From positions 496,001 through 560,000 of the forward strand of contig CAJFCJ010000006.1 of NCBI GenBank assembly GCA_904063045.1: a DNA stretch of 64,000 nucleotides, given 5' to 3'. The DNA comes from Dimorphilus gyrociliatus. Its lineage: Eukaryota > Animalia > Annelida. Below the pieces are notes generated by a model that worked only from the letters and a program-made list of their open reading frames with translations, was not told the origin of the DNA and searched no databases. Position numbers and translations under genes: made by a program. This document shows, piece by piece, positions 11,341 to 21,500 of this stretch. Position 1 is the first letter of the stretch. Each line of letters begins with the position of its first letter.

Positions 11341-13605
11341 ATGATTGTTGTTATTCAGCCAGGTTCTACCTATTTGCGGATAGGAAGGTACATAAACCAA
11401 TAACGTTGTTTTAATTCATTATCCTTTGCAATTATCCAGATCATCAGATCATTCTCCCTTAATGATACACCATTGCATTGCTCGAAGACATAAGAAAGTT
11501 TCTCAAAAAAAGGAATATTTCAACTATTATAGGGAATCAGTGACGGTTTGGTTTTAAATTTATTTTTTCAACTATTTAAGGTTAGTTGTTTTATTCGTAG
11601 GATAAAGAAAATACCCTACAAGATAAGGAAAGAGGAATAGCATATGCTGAAAGTTTACTGGCCTCCAAATACATGAGTAATAATTCGTATCGACAACCAA
11701 CGTCAATAAAAAAACATACCAGTGCCAATCAAAATGAAGAAGTTTGTGAGATATCTTCTCAGAAATCCTCTTTAACTGATTCATGTTTTGATAAGGAGCC
11801 TGAATATATTGTTGGTTCTGAGGCTTTACTGTTATCTGTAAGTATATTGGCTATTATTAGTTGGCGTTTTGGTTAAGATTTTTCTTGAAAAAGCCGGATG
11901 CTCCATATAACATACATTGGCCGGTCAAATGTGGACGATTAAATCTTCATAGCAAAGTAAATGGGGGTATTACGGGCGTACAATCTGATTTGACAGATAT
12001 TTGGAAATGGGTCCTGGAAAATCCGATGAAACTAACGCCTGAAGAAAGACGAAAGAGTCGGGTTGTTGTTGTTGTACCTGACATATTTGAAAGAATTTAC
12101 ATATCAACTATAGTGGGTATTTTGTTGGATCAGCTGGAGTTCACTGAAGTATTTCTGCACCAGGAAGCAGTTTGCTCAGCTCTGGGTGTGGGAGTTATAT
12201 CGGCATGCGTCATTGATATGGGTGATCAGAAAACAAGCATCACTTGTGTTGATGATGGTATAGCCTTAAGAAATTCGAGGTTGATTAGAAACTAAACATC
12301 GAAGATACAATATTAATAAAACTTTTTTCGCATTGATAGGCTAACTTTAGAAGTTGGAGGATCAGATATTTCTTTAATTTGGCATTGGCTCTTAAGAAAG
12401 TTAGGTCTGCCTTGGGATCAGTTTGATTGGAGACGCTACGATCATTTTTTACAATTGCAATCATGGAAAGAGCAGTTTTGCACTCTTGATCTGGTTGTTA
12501 TAGTATTTGTTTGCCCTCAAAAATTATATATGTTTTTGTTATTATAATTAATAGGATGATCATGGATCACATCTTCAGCATTTACACCTTAATCTACCTA
12601 ATACACGCCTGAAGAAGTTTCATTTGTTGGTAAGTTTGTCGACGAAGCGTATTTTAAGCAAAAAAGATATCTGTTGTTGTAATATAGATGGGAGACGAAC
12701 GCCTATTGGCACCAATGGCAGTCTTTTCCCCGAGTCTGTTTTCTAAATCAAGTCACAATATAAGAATTCCTTCTAAATTACCATCGAATTGTTCTGATGA
12801 TCCATTCGACGATGTTTTCGTCCAGCAATCTCAAATCAGGGGTCCTGGAGCTGGATCAGAAAATGTTGGTTATTATTAACTAATCATCAAAACAGTCGTT
12901 TAGAAATTGGCTATTGCAGACTAAGAAAGCAAAAAAGAAAATGAATACTGAGGAAGATTTAGTCGAAACTCACCATGCCGACGATGAAGATTCTTGTGAC
13001 GTTGTTGACACTCAATCTGTGCACTCTTTTGAAGTGGGAAATTCCAATTTGGCAGCAGTTTCCATGCGTGAGTATTTTTATGTTTCAACAAGAATTCACT
13101 TCTACATTTTTACAGCTGTTGCAATGAGTGGTCAAAGTGGTCCTGGACGACCGCCTAAACCAAAAATCACAGATGACTATGATCCAATCACCCTGACGGA
13201 TTTTCCTTCTTTACCCCAAGCTATTGCTCTTTGTATAGGCAAATGTGGTAAGGTACGACTTATCCGAAAATTCAAGTCTTAGAAGCTTTTCTTTCAGAAA
13301 CTGAAGAGCTACGGCGTAAAATGTGGTCAAATATTGTTTTAGTTGGAGGAGGTCTACTTTTTCCAGGTGCTTCCAATTTCTTACAGCAGTCATTATGGCC
13401 CTTACTGCCAGCTCATCTACAGCTTCAACCCGATTCTCTTGAAGTTCTCTCTCACCCAAAGGATGTTGATGCTAGACTTGTTGCATGGAAGGCTGCAACA
13501 GTTTTGTGCTGTTTAGACTCTGCTCAGGAGTTATGGATCTCAAGGACGGAGTGGCAGGACTTCGGTACCCGAATTATCAGAGAAAGAGTACCATTTGTTT
13601 GGTAA
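11341..13605 (+). CDS. ACTR8: Actin-related protein 8 (INO80 subunit); exact start uncertain
   Basis: IVVIQPGSTYLRIGR, YNIHWPVKCGRLN, FLHQEAVCSALGVG, CVIDMGDQKTSITCVDDG and a C-terminus ending LWISRTEWQDFGTRIIRERVPFVW*. About 9 short GT-AG introns restore the frame. Confidence 0.92.
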
Positions 13606-14062
13606 AGTTCTAGAAAGTACTAGTTTTAAATGTATATATCTGTTTATTGATATGTTTAAAAGAAATAAAACTATTTTTTGTTACATATCAAATTTCATTT
13701 TCATCTAATTATGAACTAGCGAATGAGTTGTTCAGTAGGGTGAACAACACTTTCAATTTTTTACATATGAGTTCAAAATGTGACTGTTTTTGCATATTTT
13801 CTTTGGTTACCAGTATAATCATTAATTAAAATGACAATCGTTTATCTTAAGTCTCTATACCATTTTATAGACAGCCAAGTTTCGTCTAAATTTGCTGTCA
13901 TCACAGTATAAAGTTTTTTTTTCTAAGGTCTTTAAAGAAAAATCCTGGGACTAAATTTGTTAAATTCGAAACAGGTCATGCAAAAGTGTAATTTTGACTT
14001 GATGATAACTTAGATTAAGTATGATAAAAATATTTTATTTGATATTTATTTTTTACAGCATA

Positions 14063-17000
14063 TTATATTAAAATAGAGTCAAAATTTTGACCATTACAGT
14101 TTCGTTCTCTGCATCCTAGTTCGTCGATTTCATTCAACTGTCTTCTGCAAATTTTACATACCTTGCTTTTAGAGCATGGGACTATTTCTCTCCATATCTG
14201 TAATAATTCAGACACCTGTTTTAGTCATATTATACGTCTATCTTATCCGACAAGATAATTTGCATGATTATAAATATTTTACAATTATCATCTTCAATAA
14301 TCATGACGAACATATTGGATCTAGCAATTTCTTACTTCTATAGAACCCTTGTTTATATATTCAATAAAGTAATTCTATTCATAGAGAAGCATATAAAGCA
14401 TGGAAAATTGTTCACGGTCAATTATGATAATATTTTAAAATCTTGCAATGCGGCTGAGCAATTTGAAACATATGACCCAATTATGATGGAAGGTTTGGAT
14501 AAATGCCTTCCTGCTTTAGCTGATAACAACGATCTAAGACCAATGGGACGTATTTTACACTGCTATAGAATACAAGCTGCCCTAAAATCAAGAGCCTCGA
14601 TTAGAAAATATCTATCGCTTAATCCTGAAATAAACTCTGAACCAGTTAATCGACCTGTTTTCATTATTGGTTTACCCAGGACTGGAACTACTCATTTGTT
14701 TAACTTATTATCACAAGATAGAAGGTTTAAAGCACCCCTAACATGGGAAATGAATTTCCCAGTCCCGCCGCCTTTAGGTAACGAAAGTTCACAAGACTCT
14801 CGAGTTAAAGCTACTAAGAGTATGTTTGGTAAGTTGAATAATAATTAATTCTATCAGACTATTCCATATACCGTTTTTATTTACTGTACAGAGACTCTGG
14901 TAAAAATTTATCCCTCAATCAAATATACTCATGATTTGCAAGCATTATCACCAGAGGAAGATGTTTGGATATTAGAGCGCTGCGGAATTTTCTCAGAATT
15001 TGAGTATTATTTTAATAATACCGAAGAATATTCGAATTGGTACAAGTATATGGATGAAGCTAAAATGATCGCAAGGTATCACTACTACAAACAAGAGTTA
15101 CAATGCATCGGAAAAAATTATGATATGAAACAAAGACATTGGTTGATTAAATGCAGATTGCATCTCTTTTGGCTTAGATCACTGCTGAAAGTGTTTCCAG
15201 ATGCTGTTCTAGTTTGGACTCATAGGCCTTTACAAAAATGTGTCCCATCTTATTGTTCTTTAGAGTATATTTTTTCTGAAGTTCAACAGATAGACCTACC
15301 AAATATGGAAGCATATAGAAAAAGAGTGTGCAAGCATTTATCGGATCTTGCGAATGAAGGCAAGTTTAATTCTTAAAAGTAATATGGTTAATTATTTTCT
15401 CTAAATTAAGGTACTATCGTAAGAAACAAACTCGAAAAAGAGCTAGGAAAGAAAGCTTCTCCATTTTACGACATTCAATTCAATGATTTGTGCAGAAACC
15501 CCCAGAGAGTTTTAGAAGATTTTTACAACTATCTAGGTTGGGATATCAGCAAAGAACTTCAAAAAAAGTTTGATAGCTATTTACAAAACAACCCAAAGGA
15601 TAAGCATGGAGTTCATAATTACTCTATGCAGGAGTTTGGCATAGATGAAAAGATGTTGACAGAGGAATTTAGTAACTACATGGATTACCATAAAAAACTT
15701 TTCTAAATATTATTCTTAGAAATAAATTCTTACACTACCTGTTTTAAAACGTCTACAAATTCATCCATCATTTCTTTTGTATGATGAGGTGTTGGCGCTA
15801 CTCGTAATAGTTCTTTCCCACGGGCCACCGTTGGGTAATTAATTGGCTGCACATAGATATTATTACGATCGAGCAGAGTGTGACCAATCTTCATTGCCAA
15901 CTGAGCATCACCTACCTAATGAGCAATTTTTTACTGGTTAAAACTATTTCCGTACTAATTAAGTAACACCTACATGAATAGGTATAATGTGACTTGGGCA
16001 TGGTACAACAGGAATATCACTCTTAATAAGCTTTTGCCTCAAGTATTTGACATTTTGCTGATGACGTAAACGAAGCAGTCTTCCTTCACAGCTTTTCAAA
16101 ATCCTCACTGATGTTAATGCCCCAGATAGGACAGTAGGAGGCAACGAAGTTGTAAATATAAATCCAGCCGCATAGCTTCTTATAAAGTCAATCAAGGTAG
16201 AATTTCCAGCAACATACCCACCCATGTTTCCAAATGCTTTACCTAGAAGCATAAAATTTTTAACGCAACAAACTATGAAATATTTTCTAACAATACCTAG
16301 TGTGCCAGATATTATATCTATTTTATCAGTAATACCATCGCGATCTGATATTCCGCCTCCTTTTTTACCATACAGTCCTACGGCGTGAACCTCATCGACG
16401 AATGTTAAGGCGTTATACTTTTTCGCTAAGTCGCATAATTGTTCGGCTTTACATACGGCACCTGTGTATATAAGATTAGTCACAATCCATTAGAAAATAT
16501 TTTTTTAAACTTTAGAATATTCTATTTTTACCTGTCATAGAGTGAACTGTTTCGAATGCTACTATTTTCGGCTCTGAAGGATCTGTTTGTCTAAGTAATT
16601 CTTCCAAATGATCAGGATCATTGTGTCGAAATATGGTTTTCTTTGCGTTACTATGTCGTATTCCTTCTATCATGGAAGCATGATTTCCGGCATCGGAAAA
16701 TATATGACAATCTGGGAGCAAAGTTTAAAGCAGATGCAATTTAATTACAAGGAATTTTATGTTAAGTACTTGGTAATAATTTTCCGAGAGTACACAATGT
16801 CGAATGATTGGCTACGTAACATGAAGTAAACAATAAAGAGCTTTCTTTTCCATGTAAATCTGCTAATTCGGTTTCTAATTCTTCGTGTGTAGTGGAATTT
16901 CCCGAGATATTCCTCGTGCCTCCAGATCCGGCACCTTGTTCCATTAATGCAGTTCTATCAAAAAGTGTGTATAATGACAACAGATGCAACTAACTGATTT

Positions 17001-17738
17001 TGAACGTACTTACAAAACTGATTTCTGAACGGATGGATGCCAACTCATACCTAAATAGTCATTGCTACACCACACAGATACTTCCTTATGACCAACCTTT
17101 TCATCAACTTCAGCTGATGGAAAGCTGGATCCTTTACGATTAATTTTCCTAAATATACGATATGAATGGTCTTGTTTTTTTTTCTCAATTTGTTCGCGAA
17201 AAAAATGATTGTAAGTGAATTGCTCTTCTGCCAATTCATCATGACCTATAAATATATAAACTCATACATTTGTCATTCAACTGGCTATTGTTGCCAAATA
17301 CCTCTAAGTTTTGGCTCGACTTGGCTGGAAAAGTGTCTTTTAACGGCATTGTAAATTGGTGTGTGCTTATTTGAACTTGTTTTCAGTTTTTTTTGACAAT
17401 CGTCGTTCTTTTTCGCTATTAATGAGTTGTGTGTACTAAAGTGATATTTATGTCGTTTAAATATATTACTTACCTTTTAGAACATAGTTCGCAGCTGCTG
17501 TTAGCTGAATTACGTCACTCATGGATTCCTTTGAAAGAAGCTTTTTTGACAGAAAAGGGCACTTGGATAGTGCCCGACTTATCTCTTTACCTTTACCTAT
17601 ATCCTCTACTGATTGTTCCCAAACAGAATATTTGCTTATTACGTGGGACATAACTGGACAACGTAGAATATTTCCAGAACTAGCTTGAATTTGTCCTACA
17701 TTCAATTTCGTTAAGAAAGGGCACTTTAGTACGTTCAT
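14063..17738 (-). CDS. ALAS: 5-aminolevulinate synthase (mitochondrial, PLP-dependent)
   Basis: Start MNVLKCPF at 17738 with three CP heme-regulatory motifs (KCPF, RCPV, KCPF). Core motifs [54 protein letters not shown]. The core ends ...EFVDVLKQ at a CAG|GTAGTG donor (15739/15738). A terminal exon at 14197-14063 reads [44 protein letters not shown], followed by two AATAAA signals (14045-14050, 14034-14039). Confidence 0.9.
14264..15706 (+). CDS. Sulfotransferase family 3 (bacterial/mycobacterial Stf-like), nested antisense in ALAS last intron
   Basis: Exons 14264 (or 14303)-14828, 14892-15359 and 15411-15706; intron 2 is GC-AG. 5'-PSB motif [29 protein letters not shown] 3'-PB motif, and a C-terminal [13 protein letters not shown]. 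Confidence 0.88.
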
Positions 17739-18530
17739 TTTCCCGTTCGTTGATTCTGTTGCGGCAAGATAAACTAATAGTATATATGAAATCGAAAAAA
17801 CCTGGTTTATCATGCGCATGTAATAATTTACATATCACCAAAAATATTAACATTCTATCTTAACTGATAGAAGTGAAATTTTCTGGAGGTTAATCTTATG
17901 TAAAGTGTAGAATAGAAACTGCTAGTCCATGACAGTTATCGTAAAGGAGGAACTTGGAGGAAAACGTAAATTGAAAACTTACAATCAAAAGGATTTTTTC
18001 ATAGGAAGTTAGAAAACACAGAAATGAAGAATAATCAAAATATGTGCTCCTCTCTCAGAGCGACAAGGTCAAGGCGAAGTCGATATATCGGACTATGCAG
18101 ATCAGGTAACCAGTTCAATTTTTTTATATGCATCGACTATAGATGGCGTGTCTTAAGCCAAACAAGTAGGCTTAACGTTTAAAGTTGGTGGCGCCGAGTT
18201 TTTATTGGCCCACTAACCCATTTCGACCTCCTTGTACCGGTTTCTTTTTCACGCTAGTTGTCGTATAGAGCACTCCTGATAATCGACTTATATTTAAATA
18301 ATTGTCGAAAAGTTGTTTTATCGTAAACTACGCGAATAACCGACCTGTTTCCTATGTAAGTCTTGGTTTTGTATTAATATCTGGGAAACACATCCAGATG
18401 CGTATATCATACACGCCTAGCGTTCTGCGCTAGTCTTCTACATGTTACGCTTTTAACTGTTCGCTTTCTCCTTTCAGATAAAATTCGAATGCGAGGTATC
18501 AGGTAGCGGTAATAGAACAAAGATAAAGTA

Positions 18531-21500
18531 ATGAATGCTTGGATTTTAGGATCCTGCCTAATACTATTCCATTGTAAGTACTTTTATTTGCAATTTTAGC
18601 GTAATATTTTATATGCTATTTTATTAAAATATTTAACAATCTTATTCCTAAAGTGTGATAGATGTTCGTAAGATTCTTTTCTTTGAATTAATCATTATTG
18701 TAGGCTTGATATTCCTTAAACTTTTTATCCATCTGCACTGGACCACCAATAGAGATATCAAGCTACATAAAAGCATCATAGGCCTATAAGAGTTTTTACG
18801 GCTTGGTCAAAGGTGATAGGGTTGTGTTTGTTCGCGCCTTTGCCGTATCGGCGTCGAGATAAATTAAGATAAAAAGGGAGAGTGAATTTTTTGTTTACGG
18901 TCAAAAGGCTATTGCACGATATTATCAAAATTTTATAATAATTATAATTTGCGCTTTTAAAATTTGGAAAAAGGTTTTAAAGCAACTTGTTTGAATTTTG
19001 CTTTAGATGCCTTGTGCATACAAGATCGAAGCTACACTTACTCGGACAGACCATCCTATTCTAATGAAGCACAATGCACAGATAAATTTTGTCGTTTACG
19101 TTCTGGTAATCTTATGATTGGAAGAACGAGTCCAAAATACTTGCGAGCATCTTCGACTTGCGGTACAAATGGAACGAGAAGTTCGTACTGCGTTATTCTT
19201 AACAAAAGATGTGGTAATTTAGAAGAGAATTCTAAACGATGTTACCTTTGTGAAAACAATGCGCACAACATTTCAAATGTCTTGAAATCAAATTATGAAT
19301 ACGAAAGGCGAAGAAAAAGAGATACTGAAGCAGCATGCGAACCGACTTACGCTACTTGGTGGCAAAGTGAAAACGGTATCCATAACGTATGGATACAGTT
19401 TGATCTACACGCAGAATTTTACTTGTCCCATATTACGATTTTGTTTAAAACTTTTCTGCCCGCCGCCATGTTGATTGAAAGAAGACGTGGACCTCCCGAT
19501 TCTTGGAACGTGCTCAGATATTACGCAGAGGACTGCAAATCGAGTTTTCCTGGAGTTTCAACAAAACTTCCCTCGAAAGTTGAAGATATAGTGTGCCATA
19601 ATAAATACTCGAAATCAATTTATCGCCCTTCCTACTTAGGGCAGTTTCAATTTCGACCTTTTCCGCCTTATTCAAACCCTTCTGAGTTGGAAATAGACAC
19701 ATTTGAATATCAAGATTACCTTCGATTTAACAGTCTGCGCATCAATTTTACGAAGTTGCACACCTTTGGAGATGAGTTATTAGCCAAGAGAAATGAAATT
19801 CTAAACAAATATTATTATGCAATATATGAATTAAGCGTCTATGGAATGTGTTCTTGTTATGGTCATGCTGATAAATGTCAGCTGGGAAAAATTGATGTGG
19901 ATGATTACCAAGTTGCGGCTAACAAAGAAGAAGGAGTAGTTTATTCCGTTTGTAATTGCTTGCATAACACTGATGGTAAAAATTGCGAAAAGTGTAAACC
20001 TCTTTACAACGATTTACAATGGGAGCCAGCTATCAGTAAAGTCTTCGAATGTCAAAGTAATTTAATACTTTATAAATTGTTTTTATATAGAACTATTATA
20101 TATAAACCTTCATTGTATAAATACAGAATGCGAATGCCACGGACATGCAGACTCTTGCAAATTCACACCAGAAATTTATGCTGAAAATATGGCAAAGTAC
20201 AATAAAAGTTCAGGTGGAAGCTGTAACTGTTACAAAAATTATACTGGAAATAATTGTCACATGTGCAGTTTGGGTTTCTATTTTCAATACGAATATCCAG
20301 ATGATTTCAGACGCCACGATGCATGTGTTGAATGTAACTGTGGAACAGGTAGTCGAGTAATTGACGCTCCTCGTGGTGGAGATCAAACTGATGTTATACA
20401 ATATGTTTGTCAACATCAAACTGAGCGAGACAGTCAAGGAAACATCCTGAAGAGAGCAGGGCAGTGCGAATGTAAAGAAAATGTTGAGGGTTATCATTGT
20501 GACATTTGCAAAGACGGGTTTTGGAATCTCACACTTGACAATCCTTTGGGATGTGAAAGTAAAAACGCTTCTTTAGTCACAAAAAAGATATTATAGTTCT
20601 GATATTTTGTAACTTTAACAGAGTGCACTTGCGCAAAAGAGGGGACGATTGAAAATAAGGGATGCAATAAAGTTACCGGAAAATGTGAATGTAAGCGTAA
20701 TGTTATTGGTAAAAATTGTGATCAGTGCAAAGTAAGAATTTTAATGAATGCTTAGAGGATATTTATTATTTTAAACTTATTTAGGAAAACACATACGGTC
20801 TCTCTGATAGAGAAGATGGATGTGCCGAATGTGACTGTCACTCCGGCGGTGCCAGAGAAGCAGGTTGTGATGTAAATACTGGTCAATGTAACTGTAGACC
20901 AAATATGGCTAATCGGACTTGTGGCGTTCCTAAATCTGCCTATTATGTGCCGAACATGGACTCTATTTTAATAGAAGCTGAAGTTTCCGTTATAGTAAGA
21001 AAAAAAGTTATATGATATCATTCCTAATTTAAAAATCAATAGGATCCTACTCCAAATACACCAATTGAAGAAATATATGACCTGGCTGGAATTCCTTCGA
21101 CAGGCAATGGTTTCATAGAGTTTCCGTATGGAGAAGAAATAAAATTTAATTACACACATAAGAAGCCGGACGGTCATTTTTTCATTGCCCTACGTCATTC
21201 TTATTTGCCTGTATGACTATCAACTTTTACTTATCACCTTGAAATTCTATTTCTAAATAGCATTACACTTTCAGAGATATTCGAATTTTGAAATAGATGT
21301 TAGAGTCGATGCTCATCAGCCTCAAAATAAATTTTGTAGTGAAAAAATTCAAACATCTCGACTGAAAGTAGAAGTAGATCAAGTATATACATTGGGACAT
21401 TCCGATAAATGCTTTGAACAATGGAAAAATTATACGATAACGCTTGGTCCTATTTACGAAAATGAATTCTACCTCGATTCAGTTCGTTAGACTGACCTTA

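Follow-up and report, generated by a model that had tools for sequence, protein, structure and literature searches.

In metazoans, the heme-synthesis enzyme ALAS carries a C-terminal extension of 35-60 amino acids, which in human ALAS2 derives from exon 11, the site of gain-of-function alleles, and acts as an autoinhibitor (Bailey et al. 2020, PMC7272653). The core of the human enzyme closes with helix alpha14, which ends at L545; a well-behaved core construct ends at residue 545, and the gain-of-function alleles are found from Q548 on (PMC7272653). At the other end of the protein, the metazoan presequence bears three CP motifs (PMC7272653). The extension also contains a CXXC motif that is conserved between ALAS1 and ALAS2 and for which redox sensing has been proposed, not shown (PMC9329541).

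A second body of work concerns genes that lie within an intron of a host gene on the opposite strand, as 2mit does within tim2 of Drosophila (PMC3786989). That a nested gene can provoke intron retention and cryptic polyadenylation in its host is established (Kaer et al. 2011; PMC3192792).

Here, we describe a locus of the annelid Dimorphilus gyrociliatus to which both bodies of work apply, in that the last intron of its ALAS gene houses a sulfotransferase gene. The ALAS tail resembles the human ALAS2 exon 11 extension in following the last core helix with about 40 amino acids, in having a last exon of its own, and in the order of its elements (CxxC, then R-R, then an acidic stretch), and the two proteins also share three Cys-Pro motifs in the presequence. 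The nesting resembles that of 2mit in tim2 in that a single host intron contains the whole coding sequence of the inner gene, on the strand opposite to the host, and, as in known nested pairs generally, the inner gene is equipped with introns and a poly(A) signal of its own and the host is spliced across it. It differs from them in the extreme degree of packing (93.6% of the host intron) and in having inner untranslated regions that reach the host splice sites and probably the last host exon. Kaer et al. 2011 (PMC3192792) described interference with host genes; the ALAS contigs show no effect of the inner gene on its host.

Two genes on opposite strands

The window is the whole 64,000-nt stretch that was analysed (contig CAJFCJ010000006.1, positions 496,001 to 560,000), and coordinates are counted from its first letter. 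RNA evidence comes from assembled contigs of three public runs, X1, X2 and X3; such contigs give no strand, abundance or rare isoforms. The features of the two genes, each with its support in brackets, are as follows.

14034..14062, minus strand: start of the ALAS 3' UTR, with AATAAA at 14050-14045 and 14039-14034 (sequence)
14063..14197, minus strand: terminal ALAS coding exon, 44 codons and stop (X3 joint and alignments)
14198..15738, minus strand: last ALAS intron, 1,541 nt, GT..AG (X3 joint and sequence)
15739..15911, minus strand: penultimate ALAS coding exon, amino acids 472-529 (donor CAG/GTAGTGTA)
14063..17738, minus strand: ALAS coding region (X3 junctions, Pfam and blastp)
17983-18105/18109, minus strand: ALAS 5' UTR exon (X3 contig)
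14172..14263, plus strand: sulfotransferase leader as assembled (X3 record 10, unbroken over 14172-14827)
14264..14828, plus strand: sulfotransferase exon 1, ATG at 14264 (Pfam Sulfotransfer_3, 34.5 bits against a cut-off of 27)
14829..14891, plus strand: sulfotransferase intron 1, 63 nt, GT..AG (joint in X3 record 10)
14892..15359, plus strand: sulfotransferase exon 2 (Pfam Sulfotransfer_3, 43.2 bits against a cut-off of 27)
15360..15410, plus strand: sulfotransferase intron 2, 51 nt, GC..AG (X3 joint 15356/15408)
15411..15706, plus strand: coding part of sulfotransferase exon 3, stop TAA at 15704-15706 (X3 record 10 covers up to 15603)
15721..15726, plus strand: sulfotransferase AATAAA, 12 nt before the ALAS donor (sequence)

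The coding sequence of ALAS runs on the minus strand from 17738 to 14063 in nine coding exons and specifies 573 amino acids, with junctions taken from an X3 contig and set to GT..AG. Four of the exons are matched by the Pfam family Aminotran_1_2, which marks the fold-type I PLP enzyme core, the PLP-lysine region reads SGTLGKAFG, and the presequence contains three Cys-Pro motifs (KCPFL, RCPVM and KCPFL) within its first 65 residues; the Pfam match to Preseq_ALAS is weak, at 19.9 bits against a cut-off of 21. Seven of the introns measure 54-70 nt, one in the 5' UTR measures 227 nt, and the last measures 1,541 nt. The core ends as ...FVDVLKQ at 15739 with the donor AAA CAG/GTAGTG, so that an unspliced message would read through as Q-V-V-stop, with TAA at 15732-15730, only 23 nt from the sulfotransferase stop. 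Across the intron, the acceptor reads ...TTATTACAG/ATATGG, and the distal exon opens at 14197 in phase 0 and closes with a stop codon at 14065-14063, having encoded the conserved Trp as its second residue, a CxxC-R-R motif and an acidic stretch.

Two smaller observations concern other parts of the ALAS transcript. The intron at 16243-16296 is 54 nt long, in frame and free of stop codons, so its retention would add 18 residues beside the PLP-lysine region; it is removed in both X2 and X3. The 5' UTR junction joins 17751 to 17983 with five extra letters (TGATT) in X1, as compared with 17755 to 17983 in X3, a difference that could be due to strain variation or to an alternative donor.

The sulfotransferase gene occupies the plus strand. 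Its three exons form a coding sequence at 14264-15706 that specifies 442 amino acids and belongs to Sulfotransfer_3 (PF13469), and this span lies wholly inside 14198-15738, on the strand opposite to ALAS, and accounts for 93.6% of the 1,541-nt intron. The N-terminus is hydrophobic, and exon 1 encodes a PAPS-loop-like GLPRTGTT. The closest solved relatives, matched by exon 2 with E of about 1e-10, are the PDB entries 2zq5_A and 2z6v_A (each listed as 'putative uncharacterized protein'), which we take to be mycobacterial Stf-type sulfotransferases. The nearest ESM Atlas clusters to exon 2 are all Sulfotransfer_3 as well. The likeness to these PF13469 structures thus consists of two exons above the Pfam cut-off and a P-loop-like GLPRTGTT; the differences are that the gene is eukaryotic, is interrupted by two spliceosomal introns and encodes a hydrophobic N-terminus, and that searches of NCBIfam with the three exons gave no match. 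The product is a clear member of the Sulfotransfer_3 family and a predicted enzyme, probably anchored in a membrane.

The second sulfotransferase intron uses the splice pair GC..AG (GAAG/GCAAGT), as confirmed by the spliced X3 contig. The joint between 15356 and 15408 has four ambiguous letters; GC..AG is obtained at a shift of +3, which restores the reading frame.

These models agree closely with the structural part of an earlier sequence-only reading of the same DNA. Its central claim, that a nested antisense sulfotransferase divides the ALAS gene, is upheld by the gene models and by the 14197/15739 junction in X3. The positions it gave for the end of the core at FVDVLKQ, the CAG/GTAGTG donor, the QVV* stop codon (TAA at 15730-15732) and the 23-nt gap between stops all proved exact. 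The in-phase distal exon at 14197-14063 with two AATAAA signals downstream, and a further AATAAA on the ALAS strand within the intron at 14876-14881, are likewise present in the sequence, and its estimate that the sulfotransferase fills about 94% of the intron matches the measured value.

Both genes are represented by spliced RNA

The junction of greatest interest is the one across the nested gene. A single X3 contig of 7,444 nt (contig 11) contains all eight other ALAS junctions together with the joint 14197/15739, which is CT..AC on the plus strand and hence GT..AG on the strand of ALAS. The junction that the sequence-only reading had proposed is therefore found, in one contig of one run, with 26 letters on the distal side and four more that fit either side, a length below our 31-letter bridging rule. 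We do not regard this short distal side as weak support: contig 11 ends at 14172, exactly where the sulfotransferase contig (X3 record 10) starts, and contigs that share k-1 = 30 letters mark a branch in a k=31 assembly graph, so the short distal side reflects the terminal ALAS exon being shared between the two transcripts. Moreover, a 26-nt exact match at the predicted ALAS acceptor cannot be a chance occurrence. Beyond these letters, the remainder of the distal exon draws its support from its reading frame, stop codon and poly(A) signals rather than from RNA; 14008-14171 has no X3 contig, and coverage gaps there are uninformative.

An alternative acceptor at 14215, which would add VSELLQ, was considered and set aside; the X3 contig uses 14197 instead.

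X3 record 10, at 1,318 nt, is colinear with the window over 14172-14827 and has both plus-strand sulfotransferase introns removed, and so ALAS and the sulfotransferase are both present and spliced in a single run. The X3 ALAS contig, for its part, crosses the donor at 15739 without a graph branch. The sole piece that runs unspliced across this donor is a 155-nt X1 contig (15679-15834) with a depth of 2.2. As a coral metatranscriptome, X1 may include DNA, and the piece could also be pre-mRNA.

Two X3 contigs depart from the sequence of the window, one at 16603 in the middle of an ALAS exon (202 loose letters) and the other at 13905 (132 loose letters). The loose ends have no match within the 64-kb window; they may come from chimeric contigs, from trans-joined RNAs or from outside the window.

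The two transcripts probably overlap in antisense

Intron sequence flanking the sulfotransferase coding region amounts to just 66 nt on one side and 32 nt on the other, and with flanks this short, the sulfotransferase transcript must reach both ALAS splice sites. It probably overlaps both of them. The first 26 nt of the assembled leader (14172-14197) are sequence of the terminal ALAS exon, and if the stretch at 14172-14263 is part of the sulfotransferase mRNA rather than of ALAS pre-mRNA, as we infer, the two transcripts overlap in antisense at this end. At the other end, the position of the poly(A) signal would place the sulfotransferase cleavage site at or just within ALAS exon sequence.

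The distal exon resembles the C-terminal extension of animal ALAS

Relatives were sought with two ALAS exons among 1.84 billion representative proteins, and 107 proteins were recovered at E<=1e-30, including the named ALAS of Trichoplax and Mesocestoides. The closest full-length relative, P0002, is a protein of 606 amino acids from transcript contigs. In blastp, residues 2-567 of the 573 in spliced ALAS align to residues 3-595 of P0002 with 52% identity, and residues 5-565 align to a vertebrate ALAS, P0004; both alignments continue through the distal exon. Within the tail, the Trp is kept, CKIC-RR stands opposite CNFC-RR/HR, and an E..ER stretch follows, with about 37 residues lying beyond the aligned end of the last core helix.

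The distal exon differs from the metazoan ALAS extension in how weakly its sequence is conserved. Among 43 aligned residues of the extension, only 10-11 are identical (about 25%). When seven other extensions were combined into a profile, the distal exon came first among 2003 stop-to-stop segments of the window, yet with E=0.57, which is not significant for the exon alone, and a phmmer search of PDB sequences with the distal ORF of 50 amino acids gave no match at E<=10.

Taken with the X3 junction and the descriptions of the extension in PMC7272653 and PMC9329541, the alignments to P0002 and P0004 support the sequence-only reading in its view that the distal exon corresponds to the metazoan C-terminal extension with its CxxC; its proposal to align this exon to ALAS C-termini is borne out by full-length animal proteins whose alignments pass through it. 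By analogy with human ALAS2, the extension may also be autoinhibitory in D. gyrociliatus. The correct gene model matters here, as an annotation that stopped at QVV* would miss the regulatory C-terminus, and the model extends the CxxC-bearing extension beyond vertebrates to a distant marine invertebrate.

The position of the last intron is not shared with the species compared

In Dimorphilus, the last ALAS intron falls one codon before the conserved Trp. By comparison, the last 117 residues of Trichoplax adhaerens ALAS lie in one exon, and in two further invertebrate loci (L009 and L010) the coding sequence continues past the Trp with no intron; this intron position is thus not common to these species. 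No sulfotransferase was found near ALAS within the locus DNA examined for Trichoplax, L009 and L010. Judging from read-through ORFs in vertebrate-like fragments, the intron of vertebrates appears to sit a few codons upstream of the Dimorphilus position. For the closest ALAS relative, the genomic locus (L002) covers the protein only up to residue 290 of 606, short of the last intron, and the organism from which P0009 derives has an intronless ALAS gene. When metagenome contigs were scanned for relatives of sulfotransferase exon 2, there were matches to 43 patterns, but not one was confirmed.

An intronless ALAS was also encountered at 7602-9407 of L007/L008, on a gene-dense contig. It encodes 601 amino acids, has 60% identity to residues 136-533 of Dimorphilus ALAS, and carries a C-terminal CQLC.

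A nested pair in a compact genome

The data establish how both genes are built from exons, that their spliced RNAs occur together in one run, and that the distal exon is collinear with the C-termini of other ALAS proteins. We consider it likely that the locus is an ordinary pair of host and nested gene in a very compact genome, with the last ALAS intron spliced constitutively and the two genes independent of each other. On this account, ALAS would be transcribed from the minus strand and its last intron removed constitutively, with 15739 joined to 14197. The product would be a 573-aa enzyme of the usual metazoan layout, in which a presequence bearing three Cys-Pro motifs is followed by a PLP-dependent core and then by a CxxC-R-R extension. 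The intron would measure 1,541 nt rather than about 58 nt because it contains the sulfotransferase, an independent three-exon gene on the plus strand that undergoes separate splicing, carries a poly(A) signal of its own and would be functionally independent of ALAS. The overlap at the ALAS splice sites would then reflect how tightly the genes are packed and would not be a device, and the antisense overlaps at ALAS do look like by-products of compaction. In this respect, the nesting is another case of the tight packing that is typical of the Dimorphilus genome, and it is relevant to heme biology only if a coupling between the two genes is real.

Such a coupling is unlikely, and the form of it that fares best would affect abundance rather than isoform. 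The two genes might influence each other through convergent or antisense transcriptional interference, or through a duplex between the leader or 3' end of the sulfotransferase RNA and the last two ALAS exons. The sulfotransferase contig does begin within the terminal ALAS exon (14172-14197), only 12 nt separate the sulfotransferase poly(A) signal from the ALAS donor, and interference between nested and host genes is documented generally (PMC3192792). However, both RNAs were assembled from one run, and the overlap could be incidental, antisense overlaps being common in the D. gyrociliatus genome. We therefore hold a mutual effect on abundance to be improbable.

A more specific proposal came from the sequence-only reading, which suggested that splicing across the nested gene or stopping at QVV* would switch ALAS between a restrained and a de-repressed form. 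Antisense transcription of the sulfotransferase would bias ALAS towards intron retention or early polyadenylation and so towards a product ending in ...LKQVV* without the extension, and heme flux would follow sulfotransferase expression. The layout of the locus lends this some appeal. A stop codon stands three codons past the ALAS donor, poly(A)-like hexamers on the ALAS strand occur within the intron (AATAAA at 14881 and ATTAAA at 15370 and 15016), the need for the sulfotransferase transcript to span both ALAS splice sites offers a physical basis for interference, and one X1 contig is unspliced over the donor; retention and cryptic polyadenylation of host introns induced by nested genes are known (PMC3192792), and human ALAS2 is activated on loss of its extension (PMC7272653). 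The RNA evidence nevertheless gives no support to a switch. X3 contains both genes together with ALAS spliced and no graph branch at the donor, and it has no contig on 15604-15738, while the X1 piece has a depth of only 2.2, comes from a metatranscriptome possibly holding DNA, and could be pre-mRNA. In sequence with 67% A+T, the occurrence of three poly(A)-like hexamers within 1.5 kb is unremarkable.

The claim that the QVV* form would be de-repressed in the manner of human truncations is weakened on structural grounds as well. In the tail alignment, this product would end at the equivalent of residue 538 of human ALAS2, before W540, a position occupied by Trp (or Phe) in nearly all of the retrieved ALAS tails, among them tails from protists and fungi. 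It would lack both the conserved Trp and the end of helix alpha14 and so is not equivalent to the human Q548X and frameshift alleles; since it stops ahead of W540 and L545, whereas the human alleles start at Q548 or later, the analogy is inexact. By comparison with the human core, the short ...LKQVV form may be unstable. The regulatory reading is thus unsupported and structurally less apt than it first appears, and we judge the switch to be very unlikely; even if true, it would be a fresh instance of a known nested-gene mechanism (PMC3192792) and not a new kind. What the locus presents is a structure of a common kind, an antisense gene nested in a host intron, and not a demonstrated regulatory switch.

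Least probable of all, by a little, is that in some cells the sulfotransferase transcript masks the ALAS splice sites or its transcription collides with the ALAS polymerase to yield an LKQVV-ended or intron-terminated enzyme without the extension, in which case heme synthesis would be tuned by a neighbouring gene and not by heme or iron.

Neighbouring genes and further overlaps

Compact arrangement is also seen to either side of the nested pair. The X3 ALAS contig does not stop at ALAS exon 1; its next letters lie at 18482-18511, and the interval at 18106-18477 is a plus-strand GT..AG intron, so that the 5' end of ALAS is also overlapped in antisense, in a head-to-head arrangement. Within 17983-18511 of the window, the plus-strand transcript shares at least one k-mer length with ALAS exon 1. 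It probably belongs to a laminin-like gene, which has a large ORF from near 18964. On the other side, an actin-related-protein-like gene on the plus strand (11861-13605) ends about 460 nt from the ALAS stop codon, and the interval 13606-14263 must therefore hold its 3' end, the ALAS 3' UTR and the sulfotransferase promoter.
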